From Salisapilia sapeloensis CBS 127946 (Eukaryota; Protista; Oomycota), in contig JAADVB010000164.1 of assembly GCA_023334545.1 (NCBI GenBank), positions 1-43,231 of the forward strand: a DNA stretch of 43,231 nt, read 5' to 3'. Shown in pieces: positions 14,713 through 16,168 of the stretch. A program made the position numbers and the translations under genes. Position 1 is the first letter of the stretch. Every line of letters starts with the position of its first letter. The notes below the pieces were generated by a model, which did not search any database, was not told the origin of the DNA, and saw only the letters and a program-made list of their open reading frames with translations.

Positions 14713-16168
14713 ATGGAAGCGATCAAGAGCTCTGTCTATCGAGTCTTCCACTATGTCGTCTATGAACGCAACCCAATCGTACAGGTATACATGCCATCCT
14801 GTCTATTAGCCAAAATGTGTGCTATATTTTGAGGAATAGATAATTTATGTGCTTGCCATGGGTGGTTGTTATATCATCTATGTGATGGAAGCGCACCCGT
14901 ATATGCCGAATAAATTCGTTGGAAATGAGCACAAGTCAGCATTCGATTGAACTATTTGGTGGCATGGATTCATAATCGTATTACAGGTGGCTCTCTGCAC
15001 TGTTATTTGCAGCATGTGGAACTTTGTATGGTATCATGTGCATGACGGACCCAGGCGTCATCACAAAGGAAAATGTTGAGGAATTTACCCAGTACCCACC
15101 GCATCCAGTGCTCTATCCTGCCGACAAGTACTGCCGCACATGCAAAACGCTCAAGTATTCATTTATCATGTCCACAGGTATATCGTCTAGTAACCGTGAA
15201 CGGATTATAGACTACCTCGATCCAAGCACTGTAGCATCTGCAATCACTGTGTCGCTCGCTTTGACCATCAGTACGACCACCTTGATTCATTTTAGTCCAA
15301 CTATTCTACTAATACTCCTGTCCACAGCTGCAGTAAGGCATCTCCTATCTACTTGTTGTACTCTACTCGTACTTAATCTCGACTGTTAGTCTGGTTCAAC
15401 AACTGCGTCGGCTCGAATAACTATAGATACTTTCTCCTGTACCTGATCGTACGAACCATCTCTAGAGTCTGCTATCAGCCTCTAACCTTCATTTTCGACA
15501 GGCCCAAACATTCGTATGCCTCGAAGGTTTCTACGTTACCACCAGTGTCTTCCTCACTCAAGTATAGTCTCACAATTGGTCTCTCGTACGCTTGTATTTA
15601 CAAAAATGTTTAGGCAGAGGCTATGGTGAATGGTAAATCCACATACGACAATTTGCGCTACGTCATCCAGGTACACTTTCCACCTAAATCTATCTTTTAT
15701 GTCTAATCTAATTGAGACCAGCGAAACCAACCACTTGGATTCGTCGCTGCCATGACGCTGATGACGATACTGCTCGTCTGGATCTTCTTTCTCATCCAAC
15801 TCTATCGCATCGGTCGCAACACGACTGCGAATGAAACTTTTAAACGCGACCGACTCATGGATGAAGTCTTGCAAGATGACGATTCGATCCGATCGACTAA
15901 AAAGCTTTTTAACTACCTACTTGGTAAAGTTACATCACAGGAAAGCAAAACGAATCGCAGTCGGAAGGAAAAAAAGAAAGAGCTGGATGCGTCGTGGGGT
16001 GGACTCTTCCAACCGGACGCCATCTTCAACACGGAGCAGACGTTTTCCAAACAGGACCTAGAGTACAACCCATATGACATGAAGTCGTTCCATCAAAACC
16101 TACAAGATGCACTCCAGCTACGACAACGGATGCCGCCGGATCTGCAGCTCGAGAAAAAAGATAAATAA
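14713..16168 (+). CDS. DHHC palmitoyltransferase (SWF1/ZDHHC4-like), about 9 exons including a 5-nt micro-exon
   Basis: Spliced product contains [15 protein letters not shown], the complete [49 protein letters not shown] and the TTxE motif [10 protein letters not shown]. Start codon 14713 is tentative. Confidence 0.9.

Follow-up and report, generated by a model that had tools for sequence, protein, structure and literature searches.

The window, a 43,231-nt contig of the oomycete Salisapilia sapeloensis CBS 127946 (JAADVB010000164.1, assembly GCA_023334545.1), carries on its forward strand at 14713-16168 a gene that is predicted to encode a DHHC-type protein S-acyltransferase. The gene model was built from three reading frames and comprises nine exons with 1023 nt of coding sequence, which remain in frame up to one terminal stop codon. 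Its eight GT-AG introns measure 55, 52, 56, 57, 57, 53, 52, and 51 nt in order (Table 1). The N-terminus encoded by exon 1 agrees with the N-termini of orthologous proteins (...YVFFERNPLVQ). A divergently oriented proteasome alpha-subunit gene precedes the DHHC gene, and four further ORFs noted in the window consist of a single exon. An Rfam scan of the window gave no match.

Table 1. Exons and selected introns of the DHHC gene and neighboring genes in the window.
Feature	Coordinates	Strand	Remarks
Glycine cleavage P-protein	5342-8368		single-exon ORF
Proteasome alpha-subunit gene	13460-14532	-	divergent to the DHHC gene; gaps of ~43-53 nt between aligned coding blocks
Exon 1	14713-14784	+	72 nt; ATG at 14713
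Exon 2	14840-14934	+	95 nt; preceded by a 55-nt GT-AG intron
Exon 3	14987-15154	+	168 nt; Cys-rich domain starts here (YCRTCKTLK)
Exon 4	15211-15270	+	60 nt; Cys-rich domain through D-H, plus CA of the second His codon
Intron 4	15271-15327	+	57 nt; GTACGA...CACAG
Exon 5 (micro-exon)	15328-15332	+	5 nt; CTGCA
Intron 5	15333-15389	+	57 nt; GTAAGG...GTTAG
Exon 6	15390-15448	+	59 nt; begins TC TGG TTC AAC AAC TGC
Exon 7	15502-15561	+	60 nt
Exon 8	15614-15670	+	57 nt
Exon 9	15722-16168	+	447 nt including the TAA stop at 16166-16168; TTANE (TTxE motif), SWGGLF...NPYD region
Tc5-type HTH (pogo-like) protein	16263-17318		single-exon ORF
Double methyltransferase	18370-19875		single-exon ORF
Trehalose-6-P synthase/phosphatase fusion	22842-25112		single-exon ORF

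The fifth exon provides the third base of a histidine codon, a whole cysteine codon and the first base of an isoleucine codon. Exon 4 terminates with GACCATCA (codons ...TTT GAC CAT CA), and with the micro-exon spliced in the protein reads D-H-H-C-I-W-F-N-N-C-V-G. The context CACAG/CTGCA/GTAAGG presents canonical AG...GT flanks, and both adjacent introns fall within the 51-57-nt range of the gene. Candidate branch sites are found in intron 4 (CTAAT, 15309-15313, 15 nt from the intron end) and in intron 5 (CTTAAT, 15372-15377). Re-reading of the sequence showed every coordinate and letter that the initial annotation lists for the region 15271-15389 to be exact. Its statement that skipping of the micro-exon removes the cysteine and creates a premature stop was likewise confirmed in the sequence, as the resulting frameshift leads into a TAA at 15418-15420, 31 nt into exon 6. 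A decoy acceptor, CTGCAG, had also been proposed to overlap the donor of the micro-exon. The hexamer is present at 15328-15333, but wherever A and a GT donor come after a TGY cysteine codon, a YAG/T sequence necessarily results, and it is seen in every orthologue. Hence, the decoy was rejected as an independent feature, being dictated by the codons together with the donor. Separately, intron 3 (15155-15210) holds the 9-mer TGTCCACAG immediately followed by GTATAT, an abutting pair of acceptor-like and donor-like sites. The same 9-mer occurs at 15319-15327 just before the micro-exon, an identity that may be due to chance.

The micro-exon fills a precisely defined gap in the Pfam DHHC profile (PF01529). 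In an exon-by-exon search, exon 4 corresponds to profile positions 14-34 (29.6 bits; cut-off 28.7), exon 6 to positions 38-56 (26.2 bits) and exon 9 to the end of the domain (16.2 bits). Exactly three profile positions are thus missing between exons 4 and 6, namely the second histidine, the cysteine and the next residue, and CA + CTGCA + TC encodes exactly these three residues (H-C-I). A Pfam DHHC scan of the S. sapeloensis genome returned 34.7 bits at 15389-15844 and 25 bits at 15206-15268, the latter rising to 52.5 bits with in-frame neighbors. The Asp-His-His-Cys tetrapeptide is intact only when the 5-nt exon is spliced in, and the zinc-binding spacing C-x2-C-x9-HC-x2-C-x4-DHHC-x5-C is then kept across exons 3 to 6.

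Beyond the DHHC motif, exon 9 contains TTxE and YNPYD (a C-terminal NPY-type, PaCCT-like motif), both of which vary little or not at all between orthologues. Overall, exon 9 is conserved at 41-59% identity with invariant motifs. The Cys-rich pattern, TTxE and the C-terminal NPY-type motif are shared with DHHC enzymes of solved structure (human ZDHHC20, 6BML; human ZDHHC9, 8HF3; yeast Erf2, 8HFC), and the intact Phytophthora cactorum orthologue aligns with ZDHHC9, ZDHHC5, ZDHHC20, and Erf2 throughout the DHHC domain. In contrast to the DHHC family at large, the SWGGLF...NTE...NPYD region at the C-terminus is peculiar to the orthologue group of the oomycete gene. When the last exon (148 aa) was used as query in an exhaustive search without a profile, only 14 clusters were retrieved, and the pattern LD-SWGG-F--D-I-NT...NPY (15722-16165) is conserved in this group only. 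The enzyme may belong to the SWF1/ZDHHC4 subfamily, as assigned by the initial annotation, or to another one; among automated names of the orthologues, one is "swf1" and another "S-acyltransferase 17".

A word search from one full-length match yielded ~40 oomycete orthologues with source names, from which the organism labels of the loci were taken. The same exon is found at the same place in eight other oomycete genomes, i.e., in at least nine genomes including the window (Table 2). Both flanking intron positions, which the initial annotation had proposed to check in orthologues, are thus conserved across oomycetes. Across the nine genomes the micro-exon reads CTGCA four times, TTGCA four times and TTGTA once (YTGYA). 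The only variable sites are the third positions of the histidine and cysteine codons, and all changes are synonymous. The AG before and the GT after the micro-exon are invariant, whereas the flanking introns vary in length between 55 and 97 nt and have no evident sequence similarity. This combination of synonymous-only variation, invariant splice sites and dissimilar introns is characteristic of a coding exon under purifying selection. The position and phase of intron 4 are also occupied in two metagenome contigs and in one paralogue of the S. sapeloensis genome (see below). Two metagenome scans, one queried with exon 9 by itself and the other with eight aligned C-terminal exon sequences, revealed no confirmed locus for further environmental orthologues.

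Table 2. The micro-exon and its flanking introns in orthologous loci.
Locus	Micro-exon sequence	Upstream intron	Downstream intron	State
Window	CTGCA	57 nt	57 nt	both introns
L026, Logan assembly, nearest relative found	TTGCA	74 nt	69 nt	both introns
L039	CTGCA	55 nt	65 nt	both introns
L025, Lagenidium giganteum	CTGCA	68 nt	90 nt	both introns
L024, GCA_026401395.1, protein clusters with Pythium insidiosum	TTGCA	72 nt	97 nt	both introns
L027/L028, Phytophthora kernoviae	CTGCA	81 nt	90 nt	both introns
L029, Peronosclerospora sorghi	TTGTA	64 nt	71 nt	both introns
L030, Bremia lactucae	TTGCA	65 nt	73 nt	both introns
L031/L032, Phytophthora cactorum	TTGCA	72 nt	73 nt	both introns
L036/L038, JGI metagenome contigs	TTGTA fused to next exon	61 nt	none	upstream intron only
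L033-L035, environmental orthologue	CTGTA contiguous	none	none	neither intron

The divergent neighbor of the DHHC gene is a proteasome alpha-subunit gene in the window as well as in L026-L029 and L031, which shows that these loci are positional orthologues. The gene pair thereby recurs in Phytophthora, Peronosclerospora, and L026. In Bremia lactucae, a trehalose synthase/phosphatase gene likewise lies near the DHHC gene.

Transcript data are provided by a Logan contig of run SRR21945014 (L023), which contains the uninterrupted frame ...GAC CAT CAT TGC ATC TGG.... This contig matches the Bremia lactucae locus in collinear blocks of 98-100% identity that are separated by gaps of 53-143 nt in the genomic sequence. 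The gaps inspected base by base start with GT, and those flanking the Cys-rich domain exon and the micro-exon end with AG. Bases 305-309 of the contig (TTGCA) correspond to positions 3139-3143 of the locus, the sole AG/GT-flanked TTGCA in the gap. The exons beside the micro-exon, 60 nt upstream and 59 nt downstream, match perfectly and have the same sizes as exons 4 and 6 of the window. The contig can be deduced to be RNA-derived because at least five introns are precisely missing from it. The orthologous micro-exon of B. lactucae is spliced into RNA, and from the orthologues we infer that CTGCA is included in the mRNA of S. sapeloensis as well. Sequence and reading frame, the gap in the Pfam profile, the orthologues and the Bremia transcript thus agree with the initial proposal that the micro-exon is real and encodes the catalytic cysteine.

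Oomycetes include major crop pathogens, and their gene models are mostly derived from ab initio predictors. We retrieved 45 related proteins, 35 of which cover the motif region, and the motif is read as DHHC-I/V-W in 12 of the 35. These intact sequences comprise two from Logan contigs (P0005 on the transcript-like L023, and P0024), one intron-less environmental gene and nine genome annotations. The nine genome-derived models read DHHCIWFNGC and include P. cactorum, P. idaei, P. nicotianae, P. capsici, Plasmopara halstedii, and three Peronospora species. For P. cactorum, the locus carries the 5-nt exon and the GenBank protein is correct. The micro-exon is therefore already represented in databases by nine correct models; a description of the exon was not found in the literature on microexons in oomycetes/Phytophthora or on DHHC palmitoyltransferases in Phytophthora. 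At least 23 of the 35 proteins are broken precisely at the micro-exon, each in a different way, as the initial annotation had anticipated for standard gene finders. The errors include intron read-through (DHQYS..., DHQYV...), invented junctions (DHH-ACVGEKN, DHHECWLWFNGC, DHHCSEFRLRTLWFNGC), a frame-shifted reading of the Cys-rich exon (the Bremia model has ...ADSTIIWFNGC) and complete loss of the Cys-rich exon. The distant homologue P0014 is likewise broken at the motif. With about two-thirds of the public models wrong at the active site, surveys of oomycete palmitoyltransferases would class the enzyme as truncated or lacking activity. The noteworthy points are that the micro-exon carries the catalytic cysteine and that the error rate in public oomycete models is high, and the main value of the finding lies in annotation. 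With neighboring exons of constant length (60 nt upstream, 59 nt downstream), the YTGYA exon is a ready test case for micro-exon-aware annotation beyond plants and animals. One further model, P0043 of Globisporangium ultimum (UniProt), reads ...CRTCKTPN-CIWFNGC; the residues of the micro-exon are present, the 60-nt exon 4 is absent and the frame is kept. This model represents either an annotation error or a real isoform in which exon 4 is skipped.

Taken together, these data make it very probable that the locus is a nine-exon DHHC gene and that exon 5 is a real micro-exon of 5 nt, old in evolutionary terms and most likely constitutive. It exists because the positions of two introns are separated by five bases. 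The introns of the gene are short and uniform (51-57 nt), and judging from their sizes and from work in plants each is probably recognized as a whole (intron definition). A 5-nt exon has no room for two spliceosomes at the same time, and the flanking introns are presumably removed consecutively. Removal of the first intron would place the micro-exon within an exon of 64 or 65 nt, so that the second intron could then be spliced like an ordinary one. Sequential intron removal around micro-exons has been shown in plants (PMC8831610), and intron definition with one-by-one removal has been put forward to explain the 1-nt exon in Arabidopsis APC11 (PMC4674806). Occasional skipping would produce the frameshifted form, whose stop lies upstream of three more exon junctions; it is thus a likely target of nonsense-mediated decay (NMD) and would presumably be degraded.

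The initial annotation had instead raised the possibility of an on/off splicing switch, in which inclusion of the micro-exon is set by life stage or condition and skipping gives a Cys-less truncated product or an NMD target, thereby tuning acyltransferase activity. The consequences of skipping are real in the sequence, an intron of 119 nt could in principle run from the intron 4 donor to the intron 5 acceptor, and a regulated micro-exon switch has been reported for Xlr2 of the filamentous fungus Trichoderma (PMC11121469). However, no skipped form was seen, and the sole transcript contig examined, that of B. lactucae, shows inclusion. The database proteins without the exon were generated by gene finders; their junctions are read-through, shifted or invented, all different from each other, and they do not constitute evidence for isoforms. 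Moreover, orthologues without one or both introns (L036/L038 and L033-L035) keep the same coding sequence in fused form, which shows that the enzyme works without a switch, and the conservation of exon and splice sites under coding constraint is as expected for a constitutive exon. The switch is thus unsupported by the present data, and we regard it as unlikely. Similarly small is the probability we assign to a related scenario in which the micro-exon would be kept as a fidelity-sensitive or regulated checkpoint, with skipping and NMD setting the dose of the S-acyltransferase during development or infection.

A chance resemblance is less plausible still. According to this reading, the region would be a single 119-nt intron or a disrupted segment of a decaying gene, and CTGCA would be coincidental. 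Short motifs do occur by coincidence, but when the 119-nt interval was shuffled 100,000 times, only 33 trials (3.3e-4) produced a 5-nt AG/GT-flanked exon encoding H-C-x with both flanking introns of at least 45 nt. Two 57-nt introns also fit the narrow size range of the gene, whereas one intron of 119 nt would have double the usual length, which favors the micro-exon. A pseudogene is further contradicted by nine exons that stay in frame with one terminal stop and by the conservation of the C-terminal exon, and a coincidence by the presence of the same 5-nt exon with synonymous-only variation in eight other genomes. The comparative data effectively refute the chance and pseudogene readings. Equally improbable is restoration of the cysteine by other means (a different splice, non-canonical sites or RNA editing) with the 5-nt exon unused, for which no support was found and which stands against the Bremia transcript with its precise use of the AG/TTGCA/GT exon and against an enumeration of every internal AG...GT exon in the right phase and every single-intron option within the 119-nt interval: none of these GT/AG alternatives restores DHHC, so that a different DHHC-restoring splice pattern, which the initial annotation had named as refuting its proposal, is not among them. 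The in-frame alternatives, all of which cost the DHHC motif by deleting it or by giving non-DHHC micro-exons (QHLLST...), were rejected.

The 5-nt exon belongs to the conserved ultra-short micro-exons, a known type; it is fairly ordinary in this respect and reveals no new mechanism. In land plants, ultra-short micro-exons of 1-15 nt have canonical introns, are deeply conserved, lie within protein domains, are widely missed by annotation and can vanish with the loss of a flanking intron (Yu et al., 2022, PMC8831610; MEPDB, PMC12409088). The oomycete exon shares the size class, conservation, domain location, misannotation and loss with intron loss, but it occurs in oomycetes (stramenopiles), where the introns are very short (51-97 nt), and it encodes an enzyme's catalytic nucleophile. 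A constitutive exon of one nucleotide in Arabidopsis APC11, misannotated in GenBank, has been verified experimentally (Guo and Liu, 2015, PMC4674806). Both are extreme micro-exons without which an essential domain would lose its frame, and both are misannotated; the APC11 exon is a single nucleotide with experimental verification, whereas the 5-nt oomycete exon is documented by comparative evidence and one orthologue transcript contig. In Trichoderma virens Xlr2, alternative inclusion of a micro-exon decides on a functional domain (PMC11121469). This resembles the oomycete case in that a micro-exon of a filamentous osmotrophic microbe determines a functional domain by its inclusion, yet inclusion is alternative in Xlr2, while the conservation pattern in oomycetes suggests constitutive use.

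The history of the two introns can be approached through paralogues and through orthologues that lack one or both of them. Most of the ~20 other DHHC genes in the S. sapeloensis genome have an uninterrupted motif. One paralogue (G000:C532; L018, minus strand, reverse-complement ~1437-1500) has an intron at the same position and in the same phase as intron 4 (GAC CAT CA/GTAAAC...GATAG/C TGC GAC) and lacks the second intron. Another (G000:C1008; L016, minus strand, reverse-complement ~570-645) has an intron within the catalytic cysteine codon (GAT CAT CAC TG/GTATAC...ACACAG/C CCG TGG). The upstream intron is probably the older of the two because it is common to the paralogue G000:C532 and the single-intron orthologue L036. 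This suggests that the downstream intron was gained before the radiation of the Pythium, Phytophthora, and Lagenidium lineages and the lineage of the window; alternatively, L036 may have lost it. A poorly resolved tree of the C-terminal exon places the window gene outside the Pythium/Globisporangium/Phytophthora group (89/93 support). Together, the three states (both introns, upstream intron only, none) provide a small-scale model of how introns are gained and lost.

In Lagenidium giganteum (L025, 3820-3835), the acceptor and the micro-exon are arranged in tandem as CTGCAG/CTGCA/G. This tandem hints that the downstream intron might have arisen by duplication of a CTGCAG unit bearing AG/GT, which, if true, would represent a datable intron gain. 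The paralogue G000:C532 has a further intron inside the preceding H-C pair (CAC TG/GT...AG/T).
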